Sequence record: MN871447.1
Reading direction: 5' to 3' (one strand)
DNA: 64,000 nucleotides
The position numbers were made by a program, and so were the translations under genes. The notes under the pieces are model-generated. The model had not been told where the DNA came from. It made no database searches and worked only from the letters and a program-made list of their open reading frames with translations. Below are positions 22,118 to 43,866 of this stretch, piece by piece (position 1 is the stretch's first letter; every line of letters starts with the position of its first letter).

Positions 22118-22591
22118 TTAACCCTCGAACCGATAAACAATGATTTCAAGATTGGTATCCTTAAAAGCCCGCTCAATATTTTGGCGGACCATTTCCCAAT
22201 CACCACCGGCCAACCCGCAACCGATTAAAGGAAAACCAACTCTTAATGGTTTCTCTTCCTTTTTGAGAATTGAGGACATTATCTTCATTGCCAGATACTG
22301 TGCGCTATAATGCGTTTTATATCCCGGATCTGAATGGTCGTGGTGAAATTGGCCACAAAGATTGAAACCCCACTGCTCATCCTTTTTGGCGGCCGTTAAT
22401 TTCCCCAATCTGTTTTTGACAGGGCGTTTGTCAGCAAAGTAAGGCTCAGCTATCCAGGGAAAAGCTTCGAAGATCTTAACGGCGATACCGCTCTTTGCAA
22501 TCCCAAAACAATTTACTTGGTGGGCAATGACGTCGACTTCCTTATTAAAGAAAGCCTCAATCAAATCCCCTTTAATTTCGGTATAGGTCAT
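22118..22591 (-). CDS. Macrodomain protein (TARG1/DarG-like ADP-ribose processing)
   Basis: YTEIKGDLI, IAHQVNCFGIAKSGIA, NLCGQF and FPLIGCGLAGGDW are macrodomain motifs. Confidence 0.85.
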   Translation of the reverse strand: MTYTEIKGDLIEAFFNKEVDVIAHQVNCFGIAKSGIAVKIFEAFPWIAEPYFADKRPVKNRLGKLTAAKKDEQWGFNLCGQFHHDHSDPGYKTHYSAQYLAMKIMSSILKKEEKPLRVGFPLIGCGLAGGDWEMVRQNIERAFKDTNLEIIVYRFEG

Positions 22592-22609
22592 TGCCCAAAC
22601 TCTCCGTAT

Positions 22610-23224
22610 TTAATTGATGATAAACTTACAATCTTCGAGACGGTATTCTCGCCCGCCAAAACAAAGTTTCTTAACGTAGTCAGGACGAGGAAGATTAACG
22701 TTGTCCATGTGGGCATTATGGGAAACTAATGACTTGTTAACTATTTTCCCTTTGTTGTATTCGACGAGTTTACCTGGGTGTTCTTGGGAAAAGCCAAACC
22801 CTGAGAATTTCAACTTTACATGAGAATGAAAAGAGAGATTTCGCCAGCCTGGGAATTTCAACCCTTTAACGTGCGCAGCGATAAAACGAATCAGAGCGGT
22901 ATAAATTTTACCCAGTTCGCTCACTGTCAGTCGTTCTTCTTCATCGCCAAAACGGAAAATAATCTTGACGTCATGACCGTCCAGATTACGATGCCAGTCG
23001 ATGATAAAACGAGAATAATAACCGTACAGTCCATTCTCGGCGACAGTGCGGTTGCGATAAGTTTGCGCCGTCTCAGAGTCGTAACGATAGGCACCTGGCT
23101 CCAGAGGCTGCCCGCGTCTGAAACCAATGAACTGTGCGAGCTGTACCGCTTGGACTAAAGTCAGGTGCACGGCGGTACCGAACTTGTTAGTGATAATAAA
23201 AATGGGACTTGAAGACGTATGCAT
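22610..23224 (-). CDS. Hypothetical protein
   Basis: 204-aa ORF tiling with neighbours. Confidence 0.6.
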   Translation of the reverse strand: MHTSSSPIFIITNKFGTAVHLTLVQAVQLAQFIGFRRGQPLEPGAYRYDSETAQTYRNRTVAENGLYGYYSRFIIDWHRNLDGHDVKIIFRFGDEEERLTVSELGKIYTALIRFIAAHVKGLKFPGWRNLSFHSHVKLKFSGFGFSQEHPGKLVEYNKGKIVNKSLVSHNAHMDNVNLPRPDYVKKLCFGGREYRLEDCKFIIN

Positions 23225-23829
23225 TAATTTGACTCCTGTAGTAGTTTGGCTATTTCAGTAACGAATTCGGAATGATCCTCTAATTTATCGCTACCGATCT
23301 CTGAACGTCTTATTTGATCATCGACATATTTAGAGATTAAGGCGTTGATTTTACCAGCTGGGCTGGAGAGAAATTCTTTTGATTCGGCGTAGTCATTATT
23401 CCAATGACGAATATAATACTCTGGAGAAAATCTTTCCGGCGTGTTGAAGTTTTGTAATTCTCCCTTTGCGAGTAACTTGAGGCTCTCTGAAAACAAAACA
23501 TCAATACTGCGACCTGGGTAGTCATCCCTATAGCTAAATTGGACGGAAATCGAAAATGTATTAATAACAGGGTGATCGCCACATCGTTCGATGACTTCCT
23601 TTTTCCAATTGGCTAAAGGCCCATTTTGTAAAGCGAATGTTAATACCTCCTCGGAAATAATCTCGTCACCATAGTGCTCTCGGTTGAAATTTTCGATTTT
23701 ATCTGTTAATGACTTGAATAAAAATGTTTGATTTGAACGAATAAAAACCGGGTAATAATCATTAGTGATTAAGTCCCTTTCTTCCTGATTTAACGGCTCT
23801 TTAAGAAAACCGAGTTTTGTTCTTGACAT
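23224..23829 (-). CDS. Hypothetical protein
   Basis: 201-aa ORF tiling with neighbours. Confidence 0.65.
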   Translation of the reverse strand: MSRTKLGFLKEPLNQEERDLITNDYYPVFIRSNQTFLFKSLTDKIENFNREHYGDEIISEEVLTFALQNGPLANWKKEVIERCGDHPVINTFSISVQFSYRDDYPGRSIDVLFSESLKLLAKGELQNFNTPERFSPEYYIRHWNNDYAESKEFLSSPAGKINALISKYVDDQIRRSEIGSDKLEDHSEFVTEIAKLLQESN

Positions 23830-23839
23830 AACCTATCCC

Positions 23840-24244
23840 CTAATTGAAATTAAACACTAAACGCTCAACGCCTTTTGATTTAAGAATATTTAATTTCTCA
23901 AACCACTCTTCTCCAAGATGTTCTCGCCAAGTCGCTGTTGTCCCTTGTCCCTCAGGTAGAGTATCGTGACCGTCTCGGCGATCCTCCACTAACTGATCGT
24001 AATCAAACTCGAACAGATATTTTGTTTCCAGCGTGTAATTATAGTCGCAGTCGTAATTAATTGGCTCCCCTGCCTTTTCCCACTTGTAAGGTAACGGAGG
24101 GACTCCGGCGTGGTTCCGGACATCAGCAAACCAACCGTAAATGAAATAAGATTGGAAATCAAACCAATCTACACCGCCAGAGATTCTTTCCCACTTCCCA
24201 TTTTTATTTTTCTTTTCAAACCGCCCGTAAATGTAAGCGCCCAT
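23840..24244 (-). CDS. Conserved hypothetical phage protein
   Basis: MGAYIY..FEKK..KW...QSYFIYGWFADVRN resembles the common phage MGCDIH...RNY..F..LA.VRN family. Confidence 0.65.
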   Translation of the reverse strand: MGAYIYGRFEKKNKNGKWERISGGVDWFDFQSYFIYGWFADVRNHAGVPPLPYKWEKAGEPINYDCDYNYTLETKYLFEFDYDQLVEDRRDGHDTLPEGQGTTATWREHLGEEWFEKLNILKSKGVERLVFNFN

Positions 24245-24245
24245 T

Positions 24246-24614
24246 CTATTTTTCCTCTACCTTGTAGTAAAGAGTAAGACCGTATTCGAAAGGATGTATC
24301 AAAGAGAGACTGTGCCAGCAATTATCGTTTACAGGGAGCCCTTCTTCTGAGGCAGTGACTCCTTGTAGACGTTTGAGAAGACTGAAGAGAGTGTCGTTGT
24401 CGGTCTCATTCATCCACTCTTTAAGTTGAGACATCAGATTGGCGACACCGATAGATAGCCTATAGTTAATAGTTGTAACTTCCAGATCTTCTGGTGTTAC
24501 TGTAACCGCCGCGACTTTTCTGTCCAGTAAGTCCATTCGAGTGTAAATAACTGCTAAATAAATTTTCATTAGTATCCCCTTATTAAACACAAGGTGAGAG
24601 GAAAGACCCCTCAC
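24246..24614 (-). CDS. Hypothetical protein
   Basis: Likely starts at MKIYLAV (GGGG RBS); extended 5' part overlaps a hairpin at 24591-24617. Confidence 0.55.
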   Translation of the reverse strand: MRGLSSHLVFNKGILMKIYLAVIYTRMDLLDRKVAAVTVTPEDLEVTTINYRLSIGVANLMSQLKEWMNETDNDTLFSLLKRLQGVTASEEGLPVNDNCWHSLSLIHPFEYGLTLYYKVEEK

Positions 24615-24623
24615 CTTTTTACC

Positions 24624-24938
24624 TTATTTTTGCCTGATACGGAGTTCGAGTTTAATCGATAAATCGTCACCGCCAGTTTCATCAAATGAGAGACTCCGCC
24701 AGATTCCTATTTCTCCGCCGTACGCGTAGAAATAAATCTCCCTTTCGAAAATAACGAAGAGCTTCTCAATAATCGCTGTTTCTTCATTCGTAAAAGCAAA
24801 TGACGGAGAAAGCGATTCCGAACGATGTTTAGGTAGTCCCTGTAACAATTCTACGGAATCATTAAACTCCGTCGAAGTAACACCGGAGTGACGAGCGTGA
24901 CCAACTACCAGACACGTTTCTAAAACGCACGTTGTCAT
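24624..24938 (-). CDS. Hypothetical protein
   Basis: 104-aa ORF coupled to thymidylate synthase stop. Confidence 0.6.
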   Translation of the reverse strand: MTTCVLETCLVVGHARHSGVTSTEFNDSVELLQGLPKHRSESLSPSFAFTNEETAIIEKLFVIFEREIYFYAYGGEIGIWRSLSFDETGGDDLSIKLELRIRQK

Positions 24939-26314
24939 ACCGACACCTGTAATTTAATGGCTGGGTGATGCTTGTACTCAGTGAAGACGAAATCTTCATA
25001 GGTGAGTTCAAACAACCCTTTCTTCGGCATCTCTGAGTTATAGTAGTGCTCAGAGCGAACGTAACACTCAACCGGTTTGTAAGGCTCGCGAGTTAACTGT
25101 AACTTAGCTTCCTCTAACTGATTATTGTAGATATGGACGTTAGTCAGATTACCAACCAGCTTATTGGGCGCCATACCGAGCTCATGAGCAAATGACAGCA
25201 ACATGAAGGCGTAGAAAGCCTGGTTAAAGGGCTCACCGGTCATTGTGTCACAGCTCCGCATACTGTATTTCAAACTCAGCCACTGCGTCGGTACGTGGTT
25301 CTCCGTCAACCATTCCGCTTTACGCTCAGGGGACATTTTCGGCTGGTCACAATGTTCTTCGCTGTAGCAGTCCGACATATGGTCTTCCCAAAGATCCTGG
25401 AAGTACGGGTTAGCATTGTTCCTGCACCATTTTAACCGCTCGCTCAATGTCATCTCTTCTACGTAGAACTCTACCAGGAAATGACACGGGGTAAGGCATG
25501 GTTTACCCTCCACAATATTTTCCTGCGGCGTAACCTTAACGGTCTTAGTGCGTGGTACACCATGACTTGCTAAGAACTCTTCGCAGTTATCGGTCTTGCC
25601 ATGATATTCCAGGCGCGGCCAGAAAATAGCATAAAGGTCCGGACTGTGAGTTTTTAAATGTTCCCACATCTCGTCACTACTGAGAGTAACTTCTTTCGTT
25701 TCTTCCGGCATCCAAAGCGGGTTCCACGCCGAGATCAGGATACGACGCGATTCCGGATTGTTCCGTAGGAGATCGAGCGCATACGCGATTTGGTCAACGC
25801 CCTTCTTCTCTAATGGATTCTCGGAGAAGTTTCGCCATGCTGACCCGTAAGGGGCATTAAGGTCACCCGCTTTGTTCACGGTGACCTGGCGAGTACGCGG
25901 TACACCTTTTTCATCTAGCCAACGATGGCCGTCTTCAACAGGCTGAATGGAGATCCCTTTGCTGTAAAACTCGATGTGAGCTTCTTTGTTGTTCTCTTCA
26001 AGCCACTTCAGGCGCTCGTAGTTTTCCAGAGGAACTTCTTTCACCACGTCAGCTTCTAAACGCCACGGGTCCCAGAACTTGACATTATTCTCCACCATGG
26101 TATCGAGGTGGAGTTCCCCGTTTAACATTGCCTTGTACTCAAACCACGCAGATTTACGCGGAACGAACTTCGTGGTGAGCAGAGGGAATTCCCCGGTCGA
26201 AAGGTCGTACTTCAGTTTCGCATCAAAAATAGAAATCGTCCCCGTTCCCGTCCTGTCTCCTCGCTGACGACCGGTTTCGATAATTTCACGTAGTAGATCG
26301 AGATACTGTTTCAC
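24935..26314 (-). CDS. thyA: Thymidylate synthase with three large insertions
   Basis: DRTGTGT, FPLLTTK, PYGSAWR, SRRILISAWNP, catalytic PCH, RSCD...PFN (Asn, dUMP-type) and HIY motifs; 459 aa versus ~264 for a minimal ThyA. Confidence 0.92.
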   Translation of the reverse strand: MKQYLDLLREIIETGRQRGDRTGTGTISIFDAKLKYDLSTGEFPLLTTKFVPRKSAWFEYKAMLNGELHLDTMVENNVKFWDPWRLEADVVKEVPLENYERLKWLEENNKEAHIEFYSKGISIQPVEDGHRWLDEKGVPRTRQVTVNKAGDLNAPYGSAWRNFSENPLEKKGVDQIAYALDLLRNNPESRRILISAWNPLWMPEETKEVTLSSDEMWEHLKTHSPDLYAIFWPRLEYHGKTDNCEEFLASHGVPRTKTVKVTPQENIVEGKPCLTPCHFLVEFYVEEMTLSERLKWCRNNANPYFQDLWEDHMSDCYSEEHCDQPKMSPERKAEWLTENHVPTQWLSLKYSMRSCDTMTGEPFNQAFYAFMLLSFAHELGMAPNKLVGNLTNVHIYNNQLEEAKLQLTREPYKPVECYVRSEHYYNSEMPKKGLFELTYEDFVFTEYKHHPAIKLQVSV

Positions 26315-26733
26315 TATTCTTTTTCCTCTTTAGCGATTTTATAGTGTTTAGGGGCTTTATTCACACTTACGAATTCCCCGGTAAACCAACCTTCCGATTG
26401 CTCAATGATACGGTAATAGAACATCCGGTTATACCTCGTTCCGCTCCGGGAAGTAATCAGCCGGGTTAATTCGGCCGGAAGCGAAAACGCACCAGAGAGC
26501 ACTTTATACAGGTAATCTTTCCCTACCCGAAAACGAAACTCTAACGTGATAGGGTCGTATTCGAATTCGAGCGACGAATAAGGTTCAGGCTGTAAGTCCC
26601 TGAACCCTGCGGAGAGGTAACAACTCCCGCCTGGTGCAATACGGAGATAGACCGGTTTTAGGTTAGGAAGTTTATTGGTCTTCGGAACAAACTTTTCAAA
26701 GGCCATTTTGTTCTCTCTTATTAATTTAATCAA
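26314..26733 (-). CDS. Hypothetical protein, paralog family A
   Basis: CYLSAGF...LEFEYDP..LEFRFRVG...GAFSLP...EGWFTGEF. Confidence 0.65.
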   Translation of the reverse strand: MIKLIRENKMAFEKFVPKTNKLPNLKPVYLRIAPGGSCYLSAGFRDLQPEPYSSLEFEYDPITLEFRFRVGKDYLYKVLSGAFSLPAELTRLITSRSGTRYNRMFYYRIIEQSEGWFTGEFVSVNKAPKHYKIAKEEKE

Positions 26734-26753
26734 ATAAAATCAAGACGGAATAA

Positions 26754-26782
26754 AAAGAGAGAGGGGAGTACCCTCTCTCTTT
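26754..26782 (-). terminator. Intrinsic terminator
   Basis: 12-bp stem AAAGAGAGAGGG/CCCTCTCTCTTT. Confidence 0.8.
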
Positions 26783-26784
26783 AT

Positions 26785-27381
26785 TTATCTACCTGTACGC
26801 TTATTTGTCCAAGAAGACAATCGTTTCAAATTATCTCGATGAACCAATAAATCACCCCAATTTTTCTCGGGAGAGTTATCACCAGATGTAGCTCTCTGGT
26901 AGGCATACATAATTTGCTCGTAAGAAACCTCTACAGGCATCCCACCTGTCGCTGTACAGAATAACGGCATAACGACGTTTTTTATCGCCCGGCCTGGAGA
27001 AATACGGTTGAAATATTTTATCTGGCAAAAAGCAGCCAGCGCCGCGTGATATGCAGTGTCTTTACTTTTTGTCGGGCCAGGGAATCGCATCGTCGGTGCA
27101 TAGCACAATTGAACTACTTCACTCAGTGAAACGGTGATAGCCTGCCCCACTGGCATTTCTTTACCCCAGAATTGTTTGATGGCCGTTTGGACAGTTTCTT
27201 GGGAGCGAGGAAACTTGTCCCTTACTACTTTGTCAAAACCACCGTCCATAATACCAAACGAATTGCCGGGTGTAATAATGCAGTCGTAATCCTTACCCGG
27301 GACCATCGTTCTGAAATCCCGCTTTTCAAAATTTGGCCAGCTATCAAAGCCAGATAAATCAACTATCTTCAGATTAAACAT
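26785..27381 (-). CDS. Macrodomain protein (Tk.4/Poa1-like Appr-1''-p processing)
   Basis: DCIITPGNSFGIMDGGFD, YAPTMRFPG, VVMPLFCTATGG. Confidence 0.85.
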   Translation of the reverse strand: MFNLKIVDLSGFDSWPNFEKRDFRTMVPGKDYDCIITPGNSFGIMDGGFDKVVRDKFPRSQETVQTAIKQFWGKEMPVGQAITVSLSEVVQLCYAPTMRFPGPTKSKDTAYHAALAAFCQIKYFNRISPGRAIKNVVMPLFCTATGGMPVEVSYEQIMYAYQRATSGDNSPEKNWGDLLVHRDNLKRLSSWTNKRTGR

Positions 27382-27396
27382 TTTTTGGTTACCTCT

Positions 27397-27876
27397 TTAA
27401 TAAAAGAAGAAATTAGGGAATGGAAGCATTGACTTTTTCTTGTAGTTGCGATAGACGATTTCAATCGTTAACTTAACCCCTGCTTTTGAGGTGAGAAGAA
27501 GCACGTCAGAAATGTAATGCGTATTCGTTATCTTCCTTTTCCGGTAAAGGCCAAGAACTTTTTCGGACTTCTCGTTAATCACGTAGTCGCTTTCCAACCT
27601 TACTCGGATTTCTCCTTCGGAATTAGTTCGAATGGCCAGTTGGAAGTTGATAGAAAGTAGTGGCGTAGTAACCTTAACTTCCCCTTTCTCTCCGATACCC
27701 TTCTTCAGTTTTTCTTGGAAAGTGGTACTTTCTGCGTTGCTTCGTAAATACTCAGTAACCTCATCGATTACTTTTGAGATTACTAAAATCAATTCCCCTT
27801 CCGAAAAAACCTTTTCTTCTTGTTTCGGTTCTTCAAGTGCCTGAAATAATTTAGCGAGCGGGTCACTGGATGCCAT
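27397..27876 (-). CDS. Hypothetical protein
   Basis: 159-aa ORF tiling with neighbours. Confidence 0.6.
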   Translation of the reverse strand: MASSDPLAKLFQALEEPKQEEKVFSEGELILVISKVIDEVTEYLRSNAESTTFQEKLKKGIGEKGEVKVTTPLLSINFQLAIRTNSEGEIRVRLESDYVINEKSEKVLGLYRKRKITNTHYISDVLLLTSKAGVKLTIEIVYRNYKKKSMLPFPNFFFY

Positions 27877-27895
27877 ATATTTTCCCCCTAGTTAC

Positions 27896-28309
27896 TTATT
27901 TAACCCAAGTGTCAATCGGGCGAATAAAACTTTTGAATTCGCCGTACCACCATCCGTCTTCTTTTAACACGGGTTTAAAGTACGCCGATCGTCTGGCGAA
28001 ACCTTTTGCGTGTTGGCCGTCTGTCAAGAGTTGTTTATTCCAGATTGTACGTAATACCGTTGTCGGGAGAAGAAACGTACCACTCCCTGACAGCGGACGA
28101 TCGAAATAAGGGCCAACCTGAAAACGAAAATGACCTGTTTCAGTATTGTATTCAAAATCAATCGTATCGTCGCCAATGTCAAATTGATTCAAAAATGTTT
28201 TCGATAAAGAACAATCGGAATCCCGAGAGAGGCGTACGTACTCTACGTGATAACTGCGTTCCCGGTGAATATCTTTCACTTGTGAATAAGGGACTTTGAT
28301 AAAGGACAT
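27896..28309 (-). CDS. Hypothetical protein, paralog family A
   Basis: CSLSKTF...IDFEYNT..GHFRFQVG...GTFLLP...DGWWYGEF. Confidence 0.65.
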   Translation of the reverse strand: MSFIKVPYSQVKDIHRERSYHVEYVRLSRDSDCSLSKTFLNQFDIGDDTIDFEYNTETGHFRFQVGPYFDRPLSGSGTFLLPTTVLRTIWNKQLLTDGQHAKGFARRSAYFKPVLKEDGWWYGEFKSFIRPIDTWVK

Positions 28310-28361
28310 TCACTACTCCTTGAAAAATAAAAAGACGGAGGAATAACCCCCGCCTGATAAA

Positions 28362-28904
28362 TTAACAAATGACCGCGTCTACAAACAACGCCGACATCGA
28401 ACGGACTGGCGTAAGCGACTCTTTTAACGTAGGGAAGAATTTACCTTCCGAACTGATGAATAAACACGCGCAGTCTACTTGACCACGATTTATCCGCTGC
28501 GCCATTGCTAAGGTGTTCGGTAACGGAGTGACCTTGATCGAAGCGATCAATTTCGGTCCGAGGTAGTCAGCAATGACCTCTTTGAATTTCGCGCGAGTTC
28601 GCGGGTCACCGTATACCTTTACGGTCTTACCCTTCATCAGGTTATTCGCAATGAAAGCGGAATAATGCAACATCGCGGATTCGTTGAAGGTTCCTAACAC
28701 TTTAATGGACTGGATTCGTTTCATTTTGTAAAAACCCAATAAACGTCGTAAAATGAAATAGCATGGATTCCCGAGGGGAGATCGTCGATCCCTTCGATAT
28801 CTTTCATATCGAGTAAATTGACAACTAACCCGGTAGATAATAATCGCTTGAGGGTATAAGCCACGGCGCCAAGCGGAATTTCGAAGGTAATTGCTTTTTG
28901 GCAT
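28362..28904 (-). CDS. Hypothetical protein (probable start MKRIQSIK, ~28724)
   Basis: Downstream ATG gives a short overlap with the stop of 28721-29320. Confidence 0.55.
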   Translation of the reverse strand: MPKSNYLRNSAWRRGLYPQAIIIYRVSCQFTRYERYRRDRRSPLGNPCYFILRRLLGFYKMKRIQSIKVLGTFNESAMLHYSAFIANNLMKGKTVKVYGDPRTRAKFKEVIADYLGPKLIASIKVTPLPNTLAMAQRINRGQVDCACLFISSEGKFFPTLKESLTPVRSMSALFVDAVIC

Positions 28905-29830: not shown

Positions 29831-30358
29831 TTACCCTTGGAGCGTATAACCTGCGCCGTAAACTTCGATCAATTGATCCCAAATAGGATCTACCCAAACG
29901 GGTACTTTGAACCCAAGATGTTCTTCTTCACGGTATAACCAGCCTTTCTTCTCGGTGAAAGAGAAGAAGTTATCTCTGCTCTTTTTAAGGTTATCGTAAT
30001 AGGCAAACATTTTGTGGTCGGTCGCTTCTGCTTTATATTTCGCATAAAGCCATTTACGGTATTGCGCTTCGATTTCAGTATATTCCACTGGCTCATACCC
30101 AGAAAGAATCGTCACACCACCCGTTGAATTCTCCGGGTAGCGCTGGAGTCCATCCCAAATAGCGGGTAGGGGGATAAAATCCCCTAATTCCCAAATATCG
30201 AACATGGGTGTCAGAACAGAGCGGGGTTCGTCCGGGCAAACACTGAACGTTGCATTGCGGAACGCAGCTTCTTTATTTTCAGCGGCGATTAATAACACTG
30301 TCGCTTCTTTAGATTCAGGGAGATCGTAAAACTTCTCACTCGCCAGAAACAGTTTCAT
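29831..30358 (-). CDS. Hypothetical protein
   Basis: 175-aa ORF tiling with neighbours. Confidence 0.65.
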   Translation of the reverse strand: MKLFLASEKFYDLPESKEATVLLIAAENKEAAFRNATFSVCPDEPRSVLTPMFDIWELGDFIPLPAIWDGLQRYPENSTGGVTILSGYEPVEYTEIEAQYRKWLYAKYKAEATDHKMFAYYDNLKKSRDNFFSFTEKKGWLYREEEHLGFKVPVWVDPIWDQLIEVYGAGYTLQG

Positions 30359-31064
30359 TGTTATTCCCCTGTGCAGTTAGGCCAAAATAATGACAACTAC
30401 CTTGCGCAACAACTCGGTATTTTTTCGCGTGTGCCGCGCCTAACGCAGTGTAAAACTTGAGATTGCTGATGTAGTCAATGTTTCTTTTCGTAAACTCTTC
30501 TCGTGACTGACCGAAGCGAATACCGATCTCTTGGTAAAGTCCGTTGAAGATGTCTTCATCGAGATAAGACATCGCGTAGAGTTGATCGGCGTCCCGGATA
30601 ATGCCGAATAAATAACGCATACCGGTACCGCCGGGATACTGCGGAAAAGGGTCGTCGAAGTTATAATGCGTGAATCCGACTAATAAAGTGATCATCGCTT
30701 TGTTAGCCGTAGGAAACTCACGCCAGAAACCTAATTGCTCAAGTTGCTGTAAAGTGTACTCAATATTCTTCCAGTCATCTTTCTCTCCTAAGTGACAGAA
30801 ATCGTGAACTAGTCCTGCGATGACGGCTGATTCAAAATCCTTCTCAGAGAGCCCGTAATTTGATGGCTCAAGATTGGAAAGAAGATAACCTGTCAGTACA
30901 CCTACGCCAATTAAATGGCGTGTGGAGTGGTACGGTCGCCCTGCGTTGTGTTCTTCTACCCAGCGAATGATCCCATTGTAGTCATTGAAGAAACAACGTC
31001 CCCAGATCGGGTTCATTTCCTTCAGTCCGTAATTATCCCAGAAGACTGAGAACTCACTGTGCAT
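30336..31064 (-). CDS. HD-domain metal-dependent phosphohydrolase
   Basis: PYHSTRH ... AGLVHDFCHLG ... IIRDAD: H..HD..D metal ligands. Confidence 0.8.
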   Translation of the reverse strand: MHSEFSVFWDNYGLKEMNPIWGRCFFNDYNGIIRWVEEHNAGRPYHSTRHLIGVGVLTGYLLSNLEPSNYGLSEKDFESAVIAGLVHDFCHLGEKDDWKNIEYTLQQLEQLGFWREFPTANKAMITLLVGFTHYNFDDPFPQYPGGTGMRYLFGIIRDADQLYAMSYLDEDIFNGLYQEIGIRFGQSREEFTKRNIDYISNLKFYTALGAAHAKKYRVVAQGSCHYFGLTAQGNNNETVSGE

Positions 31065-32300: not shown

Positions 32301-32328
32301 CTTCCTCTCTCCCGAAGGAGAGAGGAAG
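32301..32328 (-). terminator. Terminator hairpin with cUUCGg tetraloop
   Basis: 12-bp stem CTTCCTCTCTCC/GGAGAGAGGAAG. Confidence 0.8.
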
Positions 32329-36837: not shown

Positions 36838-36884
36838 AAATTAAACCCTCCTTTCATTCAGAGCAATTGACGAGAAAATAAAAA

Positions 36885-36906
36885 AGGAGAGGCAAAAGCC
36901 TCTCCT
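36885..36906 (-). terminator. Intrinsic terminator
   Basis: 9-bp stem AGGAGAGGC/GCCTCTCCT followed by TTTTTATTTT. Confidence 0.85.
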
Positions 36907-36911
36907 CTCAT

Positions 36912-37211: not shown

Positions 37212-37652
37212 CTATTTTTCAGGCGGTAGGCCGTTATTAAAACGGTTCGCTTCCATCACCGGGAGATTCGCTTCTGTCGGGACGTAAATCACTTGGTTCT
37301 TAGTTTGCTGTAAGCTATCTACCCAAAGGTAACGGAGATACGCTTCGTTGTTCTTCAAGCTGTCACCAATGATCTTGTTCGCCTTGGCGACACCGCCTGC
37401 ACGAATAACCTCTGCCTCCGCCAAACTTTTAGCGGACTCTTTCTTAGCCTCTGCTTCCTGTACGGCGATCTGACGATCCTGCGTGGCTTTCATCAGAGCG
37501 GCTTTCCCCGCCATCCCCTGCTGCCAAACATTGTAGTACGGGCACCCCGCCATCAGCAGCACTATAAACGCAACAATGCCGATGGCCGCCCATTTACCCA
37601 CCTTCTTTAATAACGACTTTACGTCGAAATCATTATCAGCGTAACGATTCAT
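37212..37652 (-). CDS. Membrane protein with SPFH/band-7-like coiled-coil C-terminus
   Basis: TM, then AEAEVIRAGGVAKANKIIGDSL...YLRYLW...QVIYVPTEANLP. Confidence 0.7.
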   Translation of the reverse strand: MNRYADNDFDVKSLLKKVGKWAAIGIVAFIVLLMAGCPYYNVWQQGMAGKAALMKATQDRQIAVQEAEAKKESAKSLAEAEVIRAGGVAKANKIIGDSLKNNEAYLRYLWVDSLQQTKNQVIYVPTEANLPVMEANRFNNGLPPEK

Positions 37653-37682
37653 TTCTATTTCCTATTTTTTAAACCAGTAAAC

Positions 37683-38372
37683 TTATTTGTTGGTTTTGGT
37701 GATATACCACTTCCAAAGGCCGTAGAAAGCATTCATCAAGAATACTGCCCACTGTGCCACCTGCGCCCATGAACCCGGTTGATTAAGCGCCGGGATCACC
37801 CACAGATAAATCGTGACACAGTTGATAATGATCCAGAGAATCCATTGCTCTGGCTGCTGTTTAATCATCATCCACATGGCGATGAGTGATGCGACTAAGC
37901 AGAATGCGTCTAATGCAGGAAACGGATCCTGCGTCGTTTTCAAGTATTCGGTCAGGCCATACCAGAAGATAACCCCGACAACCAGATAAGTTATCACGTC
38001 ACGTAAAGTGATCGTTTTAACCGCTACGTCAGCTTTGGCTGGAGTTTTGCCCAGGTCTTTCGTCCAGTAATAAATACCGATAAACTGCATGGGAAGGTAA
38101 ATAGCGTTCAACGCCGCATTGGCATAAAGGCCGGTATTGTACGAAACAATACCGTAGGTAATTACGCCAATCGTCCCCCAGTAATAATTAGAGACGCGAC
38201 CCTTCGCCACCAGAATCACGCAGACGACGTTAGTCAGCGCTGCCGTGAATTCTAACGGACTGGCTTGCCAGCTCCCTAATCCGACGACGATTAACGCTAC
38301 GATCAGCCAAAAGTATTCGACTTTCTTCCAGTGCGCAAAGTCAGTGAAAGTTTTCATTACCAATGAGTTCAT
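37683..38372 (-). CDS. pnuC: Nicotinamide riboside transporter PnuC
   Basis: Multi-TM; VILVAKGRVSNYYWG, LYANAALNAIYLPMQFIGIYYW, FPALDA, EQWILWIIIN. Confidence 0.9.
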   Translation of the reverse strand: MNSLVMKTFTDFAHWKKVEYFWLIVALIVVGLGSWQASPLEFTAALTNVVCVILVAKGRVSNYYWGTIGVITYGIVSYNTGLYANAALNAIYLPMQFIGIYYWTKDLGKTPAKADVAVKTITLRDVITYLVVGVIFWYGLTEYLKTTQDPFPALDAFCLVASLIAMWMMIKQQPEQWILWIIINCVTIYLWVIPALNQPGSWAQVAQWAVFLMNAFYGLWKWYITKTNK

Positions 38373-38512
38373 CTATTAAATCCTTCGAGAAAAGTTGAGA
38401 TGTAACTTGCGGATCTCAGATTAAGTTTGTCGCCAAATACAGCGTGGTAAAAGCGATAGTTATCGCCTAACATCCGCTTTATTTTGCGTTGCGTACGCCG
38501 TTGTTGAGTCAT
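38369..38512 (-). CDS. 47-aa basic small protein between nadR and pnuC (not in ORF track)
   Basis: MTQQRRTQRKIKRMLGDNYRFYHAVFGDKLNLRSASYISTFLEGFNR*; its TGA overlaps the pnuC ATG. Confidence 0.55.
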   Translation of the reverse strand: MTQQRRTQRKIKRMLGDNYRFYHAVFGDKLNLRSASYISTFLEGFNR

Positions 38513-38516
38513 GAAA

Positions 38517-39728
38517 TCATCCACCCCAATCAGCGGGGTTCTGATGAGAACCAGCCTCGATGCTTTCTACCATACTCCAATCTTTATCAAAGTTACCACC
38601 GCTGGCAGCAGGAGGGAACTTATTTGGAATTTCTGGAGCGCTCTGGCCGGCAGTGCCGTTACCGGATAACAAGTTATCAACCGCTTCACGTGATTGATCT
38701 AAACGACCTTTGTAAGAGTCCCCTTTAATGAATACAGTGCGCCCCCATGGTGTTTGGTTTTTAAATTCCCAAAGCATTTGTTGGAAGAGACTCTCTGTTT
38801 TCTCGCGGTCAGGATTCAGCCGCAGACCATCATCGACCCATGGTACTTCCGGCGAAAGAATCAACACGAGATCGTAATGCTCTTCAGCCGCGATAGCAGA
38901 AACAATAGGGTTAGGTTTACCCTCGTACAGCCGATGGTAATATTCCGTAATGAAGGCGTTCGTATCGATGAAACAGAGTCGATTAGAAGTACGTAATGCT
39001 TCCTCCTCCAGCTCTTTGTGACGATACGCAATCAACGGGTAGTCAGAACTACGGAGAGTCGCTTCCGAACCAGCTAAGACCGTTTCACAGTACGTACGAC
39101 CGTACTCTTCAACCCAGCTGGTATTGTAGAGTTTGGCGAGGTTCTTGACGAGGGAACTTTTCCCAGAACTCTCAACACCTAATACGACCACCCGCAAACA
39201 ATAATCTTTACGAACAATACTCGGGAGATATTCCCAATGGTCGTAAAGGTTTTCACGGATCATGGTCGCAGAGATGGGGACGCGGGTACGATTGCTGTCA
39301 ACGATAACGTGTTCTACAAAACCAAGGTGCGTTTTGTATTTTTCATCGTAATCCAGCTCGCTACTGAAAATAGCAATGCTCTGCGCCTGACTGTGGTTAG
39401 CTGCCAATCTACCCGCCTCGTTGAAAATCTTAGCGCCGAGCAGAGCAGCATATTCTTTCCAACCGTTAGGGTATTCCGGTACAGAAGCCTCGTCAATGAA
39501 ATCGATCGTGACGTGTTCTGTATCCGCGTAAGTTTGTTGCAGCCAGCGCAGACGATTTTTGAAGTTGAGTACCTTTTGGTCTCGTGGCGATTGTTTATCC
39601 AGCCAACGTTGGTCGTGGGAAAGAATGACGAGGACATGCTTAGACTGCACAGCAGCCTCTGTGATTAAGTTGATGTGCCCCAACGTAAGGGGCGCGAATT
39701 TACCGATTACTACGCCTAAGTCAAACAT
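38517..39728 (-). CDS. nadR: NadR-type NMN adenylyltransferase / ribosylnicotinamide kinase without HTH
   Basis: GKFAPLTLGH, VPISATMIR, WEYLPSIVR, GVESSGKS, EEYGRTY, FIDTN, VPWVDDGLR. Confidence 0.92.
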   Translation of the reverse strand: MFDLGVVIGKFAPLTLGHINLITEAAVQSKHVLVILSHDQRWLDKQSPRDQKVLNFKNRLRWLQQTYADTEHVTIDFIDEASVPEYPNGWKEYAALLGAKIFNEAGRLAANHSQAQSIAIFSSELDYDEKYKTHLGFVEHVIVDSNRTRVPISATMIRENLYDHWEYLPSIVRKDYCLRVVVLGVESSGKSSLVKNLAKLYNTSWVEEYGRTYCETVLAGSEATLRSSDYPLIAYRHKELEEEALRTSNRLCFIDTNAFITEYYHRLYEGKPNPIVSAIAAEEHYDLVLILSPEVPWVDDGLRLNPDREKTESLFQQMLWEFKNQTPWGRTVFIKGDSYKGRLDQSREAVDNLLSGNGTAGQSAPEIPNKFPPAASGGNFDKDWSMVESIEAGSHQNPADWGG

Positions 39729-39746
39729 CTGATATACCCTTCCTTA

Positions 39747-40061
39747 TTAGCCTACGAAATGGTGATAAAGACGATGCAAGTCCCAGCCCTTATGATTCAT
39801 CGCATTGAATCCCTGCTCATTCTTGACCACCACCTTGACGGCGTAGTCTTCCATCAGAAGGAAATCCCGCCCTGACTTAGAATGAATATCGCCATCGTAG
39901 ACCGGACCATCTACAATCAGCTGGTTCATGGTACCGATAACATGGCCAACGTCGTTCCGCTCGAGTAACATCGTCACGGTTTTCTCTAACTCGGCAGCGT
40001 ACGCCATATCTGCTTCTTCATCGGCATCTAAACCACAAATTTCAATAATCTGATTCAACAT
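39747..40061 (-). CDS. Conserved hypothetical phage protein
   Basis: GPVYDGDIHSKSGRDFL motif. Confidence 0.65.
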   Translation of the reverse strand: MLNQIIEICGLDADEEADMAYAAELEKTVTMLLERNDVGHVIGTMNQLIVDGPVYDGDIHSKSGRDFLLMEDYAVKVVVKNEQGFNAMNHKGWDLHRLYHHFVG

Positions 40062-40074
40062 GTTTTAGTTTCCT

Positions 40075-40467
40075 TTATTCGGTCCAGGGACAGAAAGTCC
40101 ATGTACGGACTTTGTATTTACGGTTATCAAAACGACGGCTACGGATATAAACCTCTACAGTTAAACTCGTTGCCGTTGGGGTGAGAAAAACAACCAGGTG
40201 TGCGGGTTCGTACTGGTACACCTCCGCTAAAGAAACAAACGCCGAGAACGGCAGACTTTTCTTTTCAGCGGAACGGAGATTCCGATAGAGCAGTTTCACT
40301 GCGCGTTTAGCGAACACCTGGTCGTGGTAACTGGCGTGACGGAGACTTTTCCGATTAGCGTTTAACTTCATCAGAAACAAACGCTTCTCCGCCCATGGGA
40401 GGTAATAGCTCAAACTGATCCCTGCCCCAGAAAACAATATTGCTGATAGTGTTTTCATTAACGCCAT
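40075..40467 (-). CDS. Hypothetical protein, N-terminal hydrophobic segment
   Basis: 130-aa ORF with GGAG RBS. Confidence 0.6.
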   Translation of the reverse strand: MALMKTLSAILFSGAGISLSYYLPWAEKRLFLMKLNANRKSLRHASYHDQVFAKRAVKLLYRNLRSAEKKSLPFSAFVSLAEVYQYEPAHLVVFLTPTATSLTVEVYIRSRRFDNRKYKVRTWTFCPWTE

Positions 40468-40480
40468 TAATTTTCTTCTC

Positions 40481-40723
40481 CTATCGTATATCGTTGTTGT
40501 CTTTCTTGAACGGGTTATAGATGTTCAAGTACCAAACCAACCCGACGAATATTCCGATGCAGATAAAAGGCCATGCAATACCAATTGTCAAAACCTTCCA
40601 GATCTCCATACGGAGGACGACGCGGCGATACTTGGGGTTAACAATTGGTTTCCAAACAATCATCAGAAACACAACCGCCCAGAGCGCCCCGCCGGCAGAT
40701 ATCAACATTCCCGCTGTACTCAT
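40481..40723 (-). CDS. Small two-TM membrane protein
   Basis: Two hydrophobic helices. Confidence 0.65.
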   Translation of the reverse strand: MSTAGMLISAGGALWAVVFLMIVWKPIVNPKYRRVVLRMEIWKVLTIGIAWPFICIGIFVGLVWYLNIYNPFKKDNNDIR

Positions 40724-41034
40724 GACTTCACACCTACCGTTAAAAGGAGGGTTCGCAGGTAATCCGCATCCGGGTTGAGTACAACACTGAACCGACTGTT
40801 GTCGTGAATCAGAATCAAATCACCGGGATAAAGAACTGCGGTGTGATTTCCGTCGTACACGAAATTCAAGGTCGCGTAATCTAACGCGTCTTGTTCAGGA
40901 AGCCGTGGCGTGACTGGTGGTTCATTCAGGATATCAGCGGCGGGGTCGCCTGCCAGGATACGTAAGAACCCGTTGTACTCAGTCGGAACAATAGGGAGTT
41001 CCACATATTTCAGTTCAATCACGTGTGTTAACAT
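40720..41034 (-). CDS. Hypothetical protein
   Basis: 104-aa ORF with GAGG RBS. Confidence 0.6.
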   Translation of the reverse strand: MLTHVIELKYVELPIVPTEYNGFLRILAGDPAADILNEPPVTPRLPEQDALDYATLNFVYDGNHTAVLYPGDLILIHDNSRFSVVLNPDADYLRTLLLTVGVKS

Positions 41035-41051
41035 GATTCACCTCTTTATCG

Positions 41052-41546
41052 TTAGTTATTAAAGGATCGAAAGAATTCGTTGCCGTGCTTAACCCCGTCG
41101 AGAATGTCGTTACAGAGCTTTGGTATTTGTCTGATAACTAGGATATCCATAATCTTGAAATCGGCACAGTGGATAGCCCGGAGTTTTTCATAAGCGAGAT
41201 CACCTTTAAGTGAACGCGTAATGCCGAGGAGATCACAGGTGTTTGTAACAGGGCAAAGAGAAAACCAACCTTGCTTTGCGTAGGTGTCAAAGTCCATGAT
41301 TAGTTTTCTTAGGCCGATTTCTTTAAACGGGTCATTGCCCGCCGAGGGCCAGTTGATGGCCCTGGTTAACGGGTGAAGCGAGTTTAACCAGAGAACGAAA
41401 GGGTCCGACTCTTCATAGGTCGCGTTTCCGGGAGCAAGATTACTCAGCGCTGTTCCATTACCGATGCCGCTAAATTGTTTCTGATTTTCCATCGTTACCT
41501 TATCCACACCTGTCGCAAAGACTTTACCAAAAAATTTAATAAGCAT
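41052..41546 (-). CDS. Conserved hypothetical phage protein
   Basis: WFSLCPV...AYEKLRAIHCADF pattern. Confidence 0.65.
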   Translation of the reverse strand: MLIKFFGKVFATGVDKVTMENQKQFSGIGNGTALSNLAPGNATYEESDPFVLWLNSLHPLTRAINWPSAGNDPFKEIGLRKLIMDFDTYAKQGWFSLCPVTNTCDLLGITRSLKGDLAYEKLRAIHCADFKIMDILVIRQIPKLCNDILDGVKHGNEFFRSFNN

Positions 41547-41806
41547 TAGAGCCCCTCGGTTGAGAACATTTTTAACCCGTGCCGATAATGAACGCGGTTT
41601 TTCAATAGATGGCCCATCTCAGCACATTTTTTCAGCCTGGTCGCAAGTAACGTTTTCCCCATCCGGCGTGGCGCTGAAATTGTGAGATTACTGTCTAAAT
41701 CATCAAAATAGGGTTTGGATACTTTAATGAGGAAAATATGGTTAGCGGTAACGGAACTTCTTTTCAGTTTCCCTCTCTGTATTTTCAAACATTTTTTCAA
41801 GGCCAT
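41546..41806 (-). CDS. Short protein with isolated Walker A-like motif
   Basis: ISAPRRMGKT; no Walker B before stop; GGAG RBS. Confidence 0.5.
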   Translation of the reverse strand: MALKKCLKIQRGKLKRSSVTANHIFLIKVSKPYFDDLDSNLTISAPRRMGKTLLATRLKKCAEMGHLLKNRVHYRHGLKMFSTEGL

Positions 41807-41815
41807 AGCGTCTCC

Positions 41816-41941
41816 TTATTCTAGTGAATCATAGAGCTTCTTACCAATAGCAAACAGTACCTTAAGTATCGCACCGGAGATGTACCAAGCACCACCGTAA
41901 CAGAAGATTACGAAGATAACGATTTTCCATTCTACTGGCAT
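41816..41941 (-). CDS. 41-aa single-TM small protein (not in ORF track)
   Basis: MPVEWKIVIFVIFCYGGAWYISGAILKVLFAIGKKLYDSLE*; GGAGGT RBS. Confidence 0.65.
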   Translation of the reverse strand: MPVEWKIVIFVIFCYGGAWYISGAILKVLFAIGKKLYDSLE

Positions 41942-41970
41942 AGTACACCTCCGGTATTTAAGAAATAATA

Positions 41971-42000
41971 ACTGAGAGAGGGCATTATCCCTCTCTCAGT
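41971..42000 (-). terminator. Intrinsic terminator
   Basis: 12-bp stem ACTGAGAGAGGG/CCCTCTCTCAGT followed by TATTATTT. Confidence 0.8.
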
Positions 42001-42003
42001 CGG

Positions 42004-42630
42004 TCAATATAAGTTTTCGGAATAAAGTTCGTTGTTAATAATGATAACGTTGGGACGTGTGGCGTTAATTTGTCCGGCGTGTTTCGCAATGACAAACGCG
42101 TCTTCTCGATTCCAATAACGATCCCATTGATCGATAAACCCTTGTCCGCTACCGTGCGGGAAATTGACAGGTTCTTCACCTGCCTTTGCTCGGAGGCGTT
42201 TGATCTCATCGCCGAGGATATGCTGTAGAAGCGAACCGTGGCGCGAAGAAGGAATGACCAAAGGCTCTTCTTCTTTTAACCCCAGTGCTTCTCCGAGTCT
42301 TTCATTCGGTTTCACTGTTCCCCAGATATTTGCCGCTGAAACGATACGGACCTGAACAAAGATACCTGGTGACGGCTCGTGTACGCAAATAGCCGGGAGG
42401 GTTGCTCTTTGTTCTTCAGTGAGTACTTCGTCATCAGCGTAGCCTTCCTCTTTACGGAAATGAGATTCGGCTAATTGACACGACGCGAGGATATCCATGG
42501 CCAATTTGCGAGCAGAGTCGATATCAAACTCGTACTGCCCGCTCTTTAACTGAATAACCTTATCATCGCGAATGTCGTAATCGCGGATATCTACTCGACT
42601 GTAGTCACCTTCATGAATCATTTTAGTCAT
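42004..42630 (-). CDS. Conserved hypothetical phage protein
   Basis: RIVSAAN...SSRH...QGFIDQWDRYWNREDA...GQI...LYSENLY family pattern. Confidence 0.7.
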   Translation of the reverse strand: MTKMIHEGDYSRVDIRDYDIRDDKVIQLKSGQYEFDIDSARKLAMDILASCQLAESHFRKEEGYADDEVLTEEQRATLPAICVHEPSPGIFVQVRIVSAANIWGTVKPNERLGEALGLKEEEPLVIPSSRHGSLLQHILGDEIKRLRAKAGEEPVNFPHGSGQGFIDQWDRYWNREDAFVIAKHAGQINATRPNVIIINNELYSENLY

Positions 42631-42913
42631 TAAGATTCTTCCTCAAGGAAAGTTTCTGTCCCAGTTTGAGGGTGCGGATCGGAAGTTCGATTGACCCACA
42701 CGCATTGGCGATAATGGTTCCTGTCGGTGTTCCGACCACCGCAGTGAATTCATCGGGATGTTTCTCAATCAACCCGATGCTGGCGGAGAACAGATCTTCA
42801 TCGCGCGCGAGTAGATGTAAATCAGTTTCACTTACGATGTCGCCGATGTAAGGGTAATTTGGATTGCGGTCATAGGCGACAGTTGGAGACTGCTTGACTT
42901 TCTTTGCCGACAT
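42623..42913 (-). CDS. Hypothetical protein
   Basis: 96-aa ORF coupled to SspB stop. Confidence 0.6.
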   Translation of the reverse strand: MSAKKVKQSPTVAYDRNPNYPYIGDIVSETDLHLLARDEDLFSASIGLIEKHPDEFTAVVGTPTGTIIANACGSIELPIRTLKLGQKLSLRKNLND

Positions 42914-43341
42914 TATTCCTTCCCTCCGGAGATAACCGAAAATGGGTTTGGTTTCTTAGTTTCTTTTACCGGTTCAGCGAGTTCGTCAGAACGCCCGTCA
43001 GCAGTGATGAGTTTTTGCGGGAGTTGAATCATCTGTTCCGGGTTATCAGGGTTAAACATCTGAATGACGGACCCCCACGGGAAAGTGTCTGAGGCGAGTT
43101 TACCCCCGAAACGCCCTTCGAAGAACAACCCTTCGTCCAGTGAAGAAAGCTGACAGGAATGCGGAGAAACATTCAGTGTCAATACGTGATAACCCTGCAT
43201 GTTAGGTACCGGTTTGACATATTGACGAAGAATGGGATTCACGGTGATTTCGGTACCAAAGACCGTGATGTAAATACGACTGCCATTATCGATAAGCCAG
43301 CTATAACCTGCATCAAACAACGCTTTATTTAAAGAAGACAT
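42913..43341 (-). CDS. sspB: SspB-like ClpXP adaptor (stringent starvation protein B)
   Basis: AGYSWLIDNG, LTLNVSP, FFEGRFGG and FPWGSVIQMFNPDN align with E. coli SspB AFYEWLLDNQ, IVLNIAP, RFNARFGG and VPLAAVLAIYAREN; tail PNPFSVISGGKE resembles the ClpX-binding tail. Confidence 0.8.
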   Translation of the reverse strand: MSSLNKALFDAGYSWLIDNGSRIYITVFGTEITVNPILRQYVKPVPNMQGYHVLTLNVSPHSCQLSSLDEGLFFEGRFGGKLASDTFPWGSVIQMFNPDNPEQMIQLPQKLITADGRSDELAEPVKETKKPNPFSVISGGKE

Positions 43342-43371
43342 GTGTTACTCCCGATTGTTATTTAATTACCT

Positions 43372-43866
43372 TCACTCAGGTGATATAGATTTTAAAAGCC
43401 GTCGAGTTTCTTCCCAAAACTCCACTAACCATTCTCCGCTTTTAGGCGTAACAACTTTAACGTCGTCTTCCCAGACACGCGCCCCTTTCTCCATTCGCCA
43501 ATTACCGAAAACGTAGTAATGGGTAAAAGGTAGGGTTGAATTGACCAGCGCTTGGTATTGGTGTTTGTAAGTATTCAATTTCGCCAGATTAGCAGCTTTG
43601 ATAATCGAGAGGAAATCGGGATGATGAACCACTTCCAGTTTCTTCCCAAATGCTTTCGCCTCGTTACCGTACAAGCCTCTGAGGTATTGGTGTTTAAAAC
43701 CGGTTTTTGCGTAATACCAAAACCCTTCCATACTTTCAAAGTTTCCGTACTCAGGGTGAATGAAAGGTGTCTTTGGAAAGTGAGAGAGAAAGAACCCGAG
43801 ACGGTTCTTGGACTTAGAGTAAATGTTGATGTGGTCAATACCGTCATTGTTTGGGTTCAAAGTCAT
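43372..43866 (-). CDS. NADAR-superfamily protein (T4 gp30.3-like)
   Basis: DGIDHINIYSKS...LGFFLSHF..TPF...GNFESMEGFWYY...IIKAANLAKL. Confidence 0.7.
   Translation of the reverse strand: MTLNPNNDGIDHINIYSKSKNRLGFFLSHFPKTPFIHPEYGNFESMEGFWYYAKTGFKHQYLRGLYGNEAKAFGKKLEVVHHPDFLSIIKAANLAKLNTYKHQYQALVNSTLPFTHYYVFGNWRMEKGARVWEDDVKVVTPKSGEWLVEFWEETRRLLKSISPE
43373..43395 (-). promoter_or_regulatory. Putative phage early promoter, copy 7
   Basis: TTAAAATCTATATCACCTGAGTG; inside the 3' end of the NADAR gene, directly upstream of sspB. Confidence 0.75.

Follow-up and report, generated by a model that had tools for sequence, protein, structure and literature searches.

Does the stretch of a Klebsiella jumbo phage described here encode one counter-defense system built on nicotinamide adenine dinucleotide (NAD+) and ADP-ribose, or several separate devices that lie near one another? 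The stretch (hereafter, the window) comprises 64,000 nucleotides of MN871447.1, the 305,006-bp genome of a jumbo phage deposited as Serratia phage KpLz_1_41 with Klebsiella pneumoniae as its recorded host; adding 62000 to a window position gives the coordinate in the record, and translation used no alternative genetic code. A first-pass annotation had read positions 22118-43866 as a complete toolkit that erases ADP-ribose marks and refills NAD+. The six genes on which it relied are all present at the coordinates listed below, and every family assignment was upheld, including those that Pfam misses or under-scores. We consider it probable, however, that the region from 21 to 46 kb is part of an accessory (host-takeover) arm carrying several independent NAD+/ADP-ribose modules of known types, and not a single co-evolving system. 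Every inferred role has a published phage precedent in NARP3, AdfN, or AdfM.

22118-22591, minus strand: Macro-1, a stand-alone ALC1-like macrodomain of the SCO6735/BT1257 subgroup by sequence; 157 amino acids, with H24, N27, Q81, and GCGLAGG conserved
26785-27381, minus strand: Macro-2, a Macro_2 (Ymx7/YMR087W-like) macrodomain with the motif ITPGNSFGIMDGGFD; 198 amino acids
29263-29826, minus strand: Tpt1/KptA RNA 2'-phosphotransferase; 187 amino acids, with R16, H17, R64, and R120
37683-38372, minus strand: PnuC nicotinamide riboside transporter, the predicted NARP3 transporter component; 229 amino acids
38517-39728, minus strand: NadR lacking a helix-turn-helix (HTH), with nicotinamide mononucleotide adenylyltransferase (NMNAT) and ribosylnicotinamide kinase (RNK) domains, the predicted NARP3 enzyme component; 403 amino acids
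43372-43866, minus strand: predicted divergent phage NADAR, invisible to Pfam, a T4 gp30.3/AdfN homolog; 164 amino acids, with E47, K54, and H115

From 21 to 46 kb, the genes are tightly packed and all on the minus strand. Among the ~48 genes there, only those for thymidylate synthase, Tpt1, PnuC, and NadR exceed a Pfam cut-off, and both macrodomains fall just below it. By megablast, positions 22000-44000 are 100% identical to MN871447.1, 94.7-99.2% identical to nine further Klebsiella jumbo phage records of the Siatvirus group, and ~80% identical to the sister genus Maaswegvirus (FBKp24 and Centimanus). Whole-genome searches were run on a near-identical genome, G001 (302,439 bp, 100% complete, 73% shared words).

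An NAD+ salvage pair and a NADAR hidden from Pfam

PnuC was recognized by PF04973 (E 3e-43) and by TIGR01528 (122 bits; cut-off 42). NadR contains both the NMNAT and the kinase domains and covers positions 65-408 of the 411-position NadR model; because the match begins only at position 65, the protein lacks the HTH. Its residues 2-354 align (E 2.8e-142) to PDB entries 9X6F and 9X6H, which are crystal structures of Bas30_86, a protein likewise without an HTH (PMC13464706). Together with the PnuC protein Bas30_87, Bas30_86 constitutes NARP3 of Escherichia phage TrudiRoth, which restores NAD+ against Sir2-HerA and DSR1 (Sci Adv 2026, PMC13464706). As in NARP3, the window has two near-adjacent genes on the same strand, one for PnuC and one for an HTH-less NMNAT-RNK NadR; the gap between them is 145 bp and contains a single small open reading frame (ORF).

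38369-38524, minus strand: 51-amino-acid ORF between pnuC and nadR, kept in FBKp24

Unlike NARP3, this pair is carried by a 305-kb Klebsiella jumbo phage (Klebsiella phages hold only ~1% of NARP3 pairs; PMC13464706), has the 51-amino-acid ORF between its genes and a NadR C-terminal extension of ~49 amino acids beyond Bas30_86, and is known from sequence. On that footing, PnuC and NadR are close homologs of the NARP3 pair. The two genes were also paired and adjacent in both of the other phages having either one (FBKp24 and Erwinia phage pEa_SNUABM_50), and they were jointly absent from the six other phages examined. By the NARP3 route, PnuC would import nicotinamide riboside, and NadR would phosphorylate and adenylylate it to NAD+; homology over 353 residues to a characterized enzyme suggests that this route refills the pool drained by NAD-degrading defenses. 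The earlier proposal that the pair counters NAD-depleting defenses by refilling NAD+ finds its support in this homology. The pnuC-nadR junction (38369-38753) is variable among relatives: phage MJ359 has two extra genes there, and in one wastewater contig, 374 bp are swapped for 728 bp that extend into the nadR 3' end.

The ORF at 43372-43866 required a different approach. It had no Pfam match even at E values up to 10, and the canonical NADAR profile (PF08719) matched neither the window protein nor anything in G001; there was also no BLAST-level similarity to T4 gp30.3 and no match to Pfam Phage_30_3. Because Pfam gives no match, the call rests on fold and on HHalign. The AlphaFold2 (AF2) model has a predicted local distance difference test score (pLDDT) of 96.4, and Foldseek placed YbiA, PnNADAR, and the Geobacter DarG1 NADAR on top, followed by a sharp drop. 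VIA-align gave Z scores of 11.2, 10.9, and 9.0 to 2B3W, 8BAU, and 8BAT over 132-138 residues, and no chain besides these three NADAR structures reached Z 2. HHalign of the family against T4 gp30.3 yielded a probability of 93.8% (E 1.7e-7, 88 aligned columns), with the catalytic E36 and K43 of T4 AdfN aligned to E47 and K54. T4 gp30.3 is AdfN, the anti-DarT factor NADAR that removes the ADP-ribose attached to guanine by DarT1, and mutation of its E36 or K43 weakens counter-defense (Nat Commun 2025, PMC11825919).

Other family-level evidence points the same way. The 29 homologs found share the blocks LSNF..PF...G.F.S.EG.WY and S.LPF.HYY, and the top match of the family profile among PDB sequences was the Phytophthora NADAR 8BAU, in register but not significant (E 0.17). 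E47, which aligns with PnNADAR E43 and T4 E36, is kept in at least 90% of the family. In phage NADARs, a His takes the place of the second catalytic acid (Glu/Asp) of cellular NADARs (Schuller et al.), and the near-invariant H115 of PF.HYY is likely its equivalent, as far as visual inspection of the alignment shows. One homolog is a fusion with DUF4326, an architecture described for NADAR by Iyer et al. (2022), and the homolog in Salmonella phage SE_PL, which adjoins an ADP-ribosylglycohydrolase gene, has weak Pfam matches to NADAR (E 0.005, sub-cut-off) and Phage_30_3. The depositor's label "NADAR PF08719" on the Pseudomonas phage DT01 homolog was not reproducible with current Pfam.

On the modeled fold and these alignments, the ORF is a NADAR homologous to T4 AdfN. 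Both are small stand-alone phage proteins of NADAR fold with aligned catalytic Glu and Lys, and they resemble the same three NADAR structures in the PDB to a similar degree (Z at least 9). The window protein, however, belongs to a separate clade. The position of the catalytic Lys (+7 from the Glu) is occupied by K54 here and by Lys in close kin, but it is variable across the wider family, and substrates may therefore differ among its members. The existence of a NADAR at this position, as first proposed, was thus borne out by the AF2 fold and the HHalign result, and the more specific proposal that it reverses guanine ADP-ribosylation by DarT1 is favored by the homology to AdfN and the alignment of both catalytic residues but loses force with the variability of the Lys. 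From the fold and the aligned Glu and Lys, the protein would most likely cleave ADP-ribosyl-guanine in phage DNA by hydrolysis of its N-glycosidic bond, the reaction by which AdfN counters DarT1.

The clade is large: 516 phage records, from Ackermannviridae and many jumbo phages, contain a member, which is almost always annotated as hypothetical. Phage CBA120 carries one (orf012, L010:2968-3435), at a distance of 5.5 kb from a Macro-1-like gene. The matching region of Erwinia phage RAY is annotated as "DprA-like," which may indicate a SLOG fusion. Directly downstream of the window gene is a minus-strand gene (42913-43341) with a weak SspB match (E 0.25), which is called "SspB-like" in MJ359.

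Three macrodomains, one of them outside the window

Both macrodomains of the window had been assigned the role of DarG, whose macrodomain reverses thymidine ADP-ribosylation by DarT. Macro-1 scores 20.2 bits on Pfam Macro (cut-off 22) and has 153 homologs, many with PF01661. A profile of 35 sequences retrieved BT1257 (2e-23), SCO6735 (6e-22), TARG1 (1e-16), and DarG (5e-14), as well as Poa1p. H24, N27, and Q81 are invariant in the 35-sequence alignment and correspond to H24, N27, and the essential Q85 of SCO6735; the H24/N27 motif, the Gln, and the GCGLAGG loop were aligned residue by residue with 5E3B and 2FG1. Q81 occupies the position of the catalytic Lys (K84 in TARG1, K80 in Taq DarG), and another residue stands within GCGLAGG where TARG1 has D125. 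The PADLOC and NCBIfam models of DarG give Macro-1 43-44 bits, over the macrodomain part only.

In SCO6735 itself, neither catalytic residue of TARG1 is present and Gln85 is required; the enzyme nonetheless undoes the thymidine ADP-ribosylation made by DarT, both in vitro and in cells, with greater efficiency than DarG or TARG1, and proteins are also among its substrates (PMC9411070). By its residues, Macro-1 is a member of the SCO6735/BT1257 subgroup, sharing the H..N motif, the Gln at the catalytic position, and GCGLAGG; because of this SCO6735-type Gln signature, it could do the work of a DarG macrodomain although it is not one. It differs from SCO6735 in missing the DNA-positioning lysines K34 and K89, in being phage-encoded, and in that only its sequence is known. 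Macro-1 would most likely strip ADP-ribose from DNA thymidine or another macromolecular acceptor by the Gln-dependent SCO6735 mechanism.

Macro-2 is of another kind. It scores 23.3 bits on Macro_2 (cut-off 27), and its homologs carry PF14519 (10/26) or PF01661. The top match was 1NJR, both by sequence (E 1e-5) and by Foldseek (E 7e-8); with the AF2 model (pLDDT 95), yeast Ymx7 was best, followed by DarG macrodomains, and 195 macrodomain chains were found at E <=0.001. There was no match to the DarG models. Macro-2 shares the GNS.G..GGFD phosphate-binding motif with the yeast Ymx7/YMR087W ADP-ribose-1''-monophosphatase (Macro_2, 1NJR) but is ~90 residues shorter, with ~19% identity over the structural alignment. 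Because the domain is Ymx7-type and resembles an Appr-1''-phosphatase, Macro-2 more likely acts on small molecules, as far as the modeled structure indicates. Its homologs in MJ359 and FBKp24 are mislabeled "tail protein," an error propagating from the label of phrog_14717.

The most DarG-like macrodomain of this phage is not in the window at all. Macro-3 lies ~160 kb from the six genes, at MN871447.1 266420-266875 (equivalent to G001:C1:41867-42193 and L004:1423-1878); it was found above the Pfam cut-off in the whole-genome search of G001 and is 100% identical in MN871447.1. It matched the Mycobacterium tuberculosis and Thermus aquaticus DarG macrodomains with E 1e-19, retains the DarG Asn (TVNCVG) and Lys (TKDHW), and scores 128 bits on the DarG models. 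All of the DarG-model matches cover positions ~4-147 of 329-338 only, with scores far under the 250-bit cut-off, and the C-terminal DarT-binding domain is not in reach of any DarG-model match of these macrodomains; nor was an adjacent darT gene seen, although no search aimed at DarT was made. Macro-3 has 263 phage homologs, richest in Pseudomonas and Erwinia phages; AdfM was characterized in chimalliviruses, whose hosts belong to these same genera (PMC13309987). It is annotated as hypothetical or "phosphatase."

AdfM is PhiKZ gp104 (Cell Rep 2026, PMC13309987). Like AdfM and the DarG2 macrodomain, Macro-3 keeps the Asn and Lys, and it is a jumbo phage-encoded orphan macrodomain without a DarT-binding domain; Macro-1, with Gln for Lys and 43 bits, and Macro-2, with no match, are unlike them. 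Because Macro-3 is the true DarG type by sequence, the phage's best anti-DarTG2 candidate lies ~160 kb outside the six-gene segment, and Macro-1 would back up this separate DarG/AdfM-type protein. The original assignment is thus correct in that Macro-1 and Macro-2 are macrodomains but not in casting them as DarG, as one has Gln for Lys and the other has no match. Reversal of thymidine ADP-ribosylation likewise may apply to Macro-1, through its SCO6735 subgroup, whereas Macro-2 more likely works on small molecules. Nor does the description "complete" fit: besides the location of Macro-3, no cyclic phosphodiesterase, Nudix protein, or RNA ligase was detected by Pfam in G001.

Tpt1 and its conserved neighbors

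The identity of Tpt1 is straightforward. PF01885 matches with E 1e-42 (146 bits), and the protein aligns end to end with solved Tpt1 enzymes, including 7KW8 (E 1e-40), which we take to be Runella slithyformis Tpt1 (RslTpt1). R16, H17, R64, and R120 align to the essential R16, H17, R64, and R119 of RslTpt1. Its function in a phage is less obvious, and two adjoining genes bear on it.

29831-30358, minus strand: a 175-amino-acid ORFan (ORF175) between the HD gene and Tpt1
30336-31064, minus strand: HD/PDEase_I-like phosphohydrolase in the same tightly coupled unit as Tpt1; 242 amino acids, with H..HD..D motifs

ORF175 overlaps the HD gene and stops 4 nucleotides ahead of Tpt1. The three genes are translationally coupled and form the best-conserved trio of their unit relative to FBKp24 (HD, ORF175, and Tpt1: 89, 86, and 84%). 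The HD protein resembles viral HD/PDEase_I clusters, which are cyclic-nucleotide phosphodiesterase-like, and has no kinase domain; judged from its sequence, it could break down an immune signal of the cyclic-nucleotide kind or act in RNA end healing, and it is a possible partner of Tpt1. In Runella, Tpt1 clusters with an HD-domain end-healing enzyme and a ligase. The phage enzyme resembles RslTpt1 in its full-length match, its four essential residues, and the nearby HD-domain gene; it differs in that no ligase, kinase, or MTase-HIT partner was detected.

These neighbors raise the question of RNA repair, in which Tpt1, the HD protein, and Macro-2 (possibly also the NADAR) would carry out NAD+-dependent healing of tRNAs or mRNAs cut by anticodon nucleases of the host: the HD protein would act on the cyclic phosphate end, a ligase would join the pieces, Tpt1 would remove the 2'-phosphate at the junction, and Macro-2 would dephosphorylate the ADP-ribose phosphate by-product. 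Iyer et al. (2022) placed the KptA of jumbo phages in RNA repair, alongside 2H, Macro, and possibly NADAR proteins, and this precedent, the composition of the Runella cluster, the tight coupling and conservation of the HD-ORF175-Tpt1 trio, and yeast Appr-1''-phosphatase Ymx7 as the closest structure to Macro-2 all favor the idea. Against it, neither an RNA ligase (PF09414) nor a 2H/LigT phosphoesterase (PF13563 and PF02834) matched in G001, where the Tpt1 control was found; PF09511, another RNA ligase profile, also had no match in G001, but it had none in the control genomes either. The same control accompanied the lack of matches in G001 to Nudix (PF00293) and NAD-dependent DNA ligase (PF01653). 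Such Pfam absences in G001 are weak evidence because most proteins of this phage escape Pfam. In addition, the HD protein looks to be of the cyclic-nucleotide phosphodiesterase type and lacks a kinase domain, and Macro-2 and Tpt1 are in different hairpin-delimited units (see below). We regard RNA repair as doubtful.

The chain first proposed, in which the product of Tpt1 passes through a derivative to a macrodomain, lacks a detectable cyclic phosphodiesterase in G001, and a yeast-type pathway is argued against because this enzyme and the ligase both went undetected there by Pfam. Within the modular reading, Tpt1, the conserved HD neighbor, and Macro-2 may handle RNA 2'-phosphates and/or phosphorylated ADP-ribose small molecules, which is the least certain step of the mechanism that we propose. 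A bolder and, in our estimation, improbable proposal is that HD, ORF175, and Tpt1 (possibly with Macro-2) make up a new NAD+-using phage eraser of a 2'-phosphate/ADP-ribose-phosphate RNA mark or immune signal of host defense, and that, separately, the Pfam-invisible NADAR clade (>500 phages) acts on a substrate other than DarT1-modified guanine; the trio would then not serve splicing-type repair, because no ligase or 2H enzyme was detected. For the role of Tpt1 in phages, the conserved HD neighbor provides a concrete handle. A cRec or SLOG domain was considered in the 120-amino-acid gene at 28362-28724, which belongs to the Tpt1 operon and lies two genes downstream of Tpt1, and rejected, as the atlas scores (<=0.83) were at chance level.

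One system or several modules

Eight strong intergenic hairpins with a GA-rich stem (AGAGG...CCTCT) partition the region from 21 to 46 kb, and others of the same family lie elsewhere in the window.

21111-21138, intergenic: hairpin
24591-24617, intergenic: hairpin
26754-26782, intergenic: hairpin
28333-28355, intergenic: hairpin
32301-32328, intergenic: hairpin
36882-36909, intergenic: hairpin
41970-42001, intergenic, minus strand: hairpin between the NADAR unit and the NARP3 unit
45862-45885, intergenic: hairpin
8369, 13413, 14059, 15492, 55255, and 60288: further hairpins of the GA-rich family

The motif gave 10 pattern matches in the window, as against 0.23 expected by chance, and the hairpins look like phage terminators or RNA-processing sites punctuating the early arm. 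Shuffled sequence gave sigma-70-like promoter matches at least as often. In one relative from a gut metagenome, the hairpin at 41970-42001 has paired indels.

Measured against these boundaries, the notion of one toolkit gives way to five separate units, and beyond its lineage the set does not stay together. In FBKp24 the region is fully syntenic, as part of the synteny of the whole arm. In seven distant phages with a NADAR of this clade, NadR and PnuC occur once, adjacent to one another and ~7 kb from the NADAR, and the macrodomains vary. Random placement over the whole genome would put at least five of the six units within 21.3 kb with P ~6e-4. The six genes are better conserved than their surroundings, with a median amino acid identity to FBKp24 of 84% versus 70% for 39 neighbors (one-sided Mann-Whitney P = 0.013). 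Relatives from wastewater and gut metagenomes retain the whole NARP3-to-NADAR interval (37650-43600); their differences are mostly transitions, many of them 3 nucleotides apart, and no frameshifts were found in pnuC, nadR, or the NADAR gene.

Several observations, in addition to the lysines missing from Macro-1 and the variable NADAR Lys, weigh against our reading of these genes as counter-defense modules gathered in one arm. The clustering falls to P ~0.04 when the null is the 100-kb accessory arm. The six genes sit among ORFans in five hairpin-delimited units, of which only PnuC and NadR share one. In the seven distant phages, the remaining parts are for the most part missing or sort independently, with Tpt1 in 0/7. 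Iyer et al. (2022) from the Aravind laboratory argue that the targets of most Macro and NADAR domains in phages are small ADP-ribose signals, as opposed to adducts on DNA. The expression signal consists of short contigs on nadR and its neighbors in only one true metatranscriptome, some of low identity, and contigs cannot show transcription.

Much of this could be accommodated by co-location without functional linkage, where unrelated accessory genes are neighbors because the phage keeps its non-essential early genes in one arm, the "toolkit" being a construct of the reader. The five units bounded by strong hairpins, the independent assortment in distant phages, the ~40 intervening ORFans without a family, the modest P value under the 100-kb null, and the placement of the DarG-type macrodomain elsewhere in the genome are all to be expected if so. 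On the other side, all six genes are predicted to act on one metabolite family and are better conserved than their neighbors, and Macro and NADAR domains co-occur above chance in DNA viruses in a survey of 21,191 proteomes (Iyer et al., 2022). We judge bare co-location possible but on balance unlikely; it is moreover compatible with independent modules of known type, the explanation that we prefer, which already treats the modules as separate.

The proximity of the NADAR to NadR (3.6 kb here and ~7 kb in the Erwinia jumbo phage) suggests a further alternative, that the phage serves its own needs and no counter-defense is involved: its own NAD+-using enzymes (Tpt1 and a possible virion-packaged ADP-ribosyltransferase) would create a demand fed by NARP3, and the macrodomains and NADAR would recycle or limit their products. 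NADARs are indeed co-expressed with ADP-ribosyltransferases in T4-like phages and neighbor NAD+ salvage genes (Iyer et al., 2022). However, the candidate ADP-ribosyltransferase-like head protein (NC_061418 79720-80445) has no Pfam match, G001 has no match to the NAD-dependent DNA ligase profile, and the homologs NARP3, AdfN, and AdfM have demonstrated anti-defense phenotypes. We consider this alternative very unlikely.

Independent modules of known type were largely to be expected: Macro, NADAR, and NAD+ salvage genes occur together in large phages, with NADARs neighboring the salvage genes (Iyer et al., 2022), and a 2024 paper on NAD+ in jumbo phages covers related ground. What is new here is the NADAR/AdfN assignment of a large "hypothetical" clade, the subgroup typing of two macrodomains, the DarG-type macrodomain outside the window, and the evidence for modularity. 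If the reading is true, one lineage of Klebsiella jumbo phages would stack counter-measures against NAD+ depletion (of the Sir2/DSR type), DarTG1, and DarTG2, the last through two mechanistically different macrodomains, which would matter when Klebsiella phages are selected or engineered for therapy. The chief practical gain lies in annotation, in that the 516-genome "hypothetical" family, including the CBA120 protein, may be renamed as NADARs related to AdfN, and the Macro-2 homologs labeled as tail proteins become macrodomains.

Two other genes near Macro-1 and Macro-2 were noted. A BCS1-like AAA+ ATPase with BCS1_N and AAA domains (19666-21045, minus strand) is directly downstream of the Macro-1 unit. 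The 459-amino-acid thymidylate synthase (24935-26314, minus strand) has a split Pfam match in which 201 residues span 138 profile positions, indicating large insertions, and the FBKp24 thymidylate synthase gene (1392 nucleotides) likewise carries large insertions.

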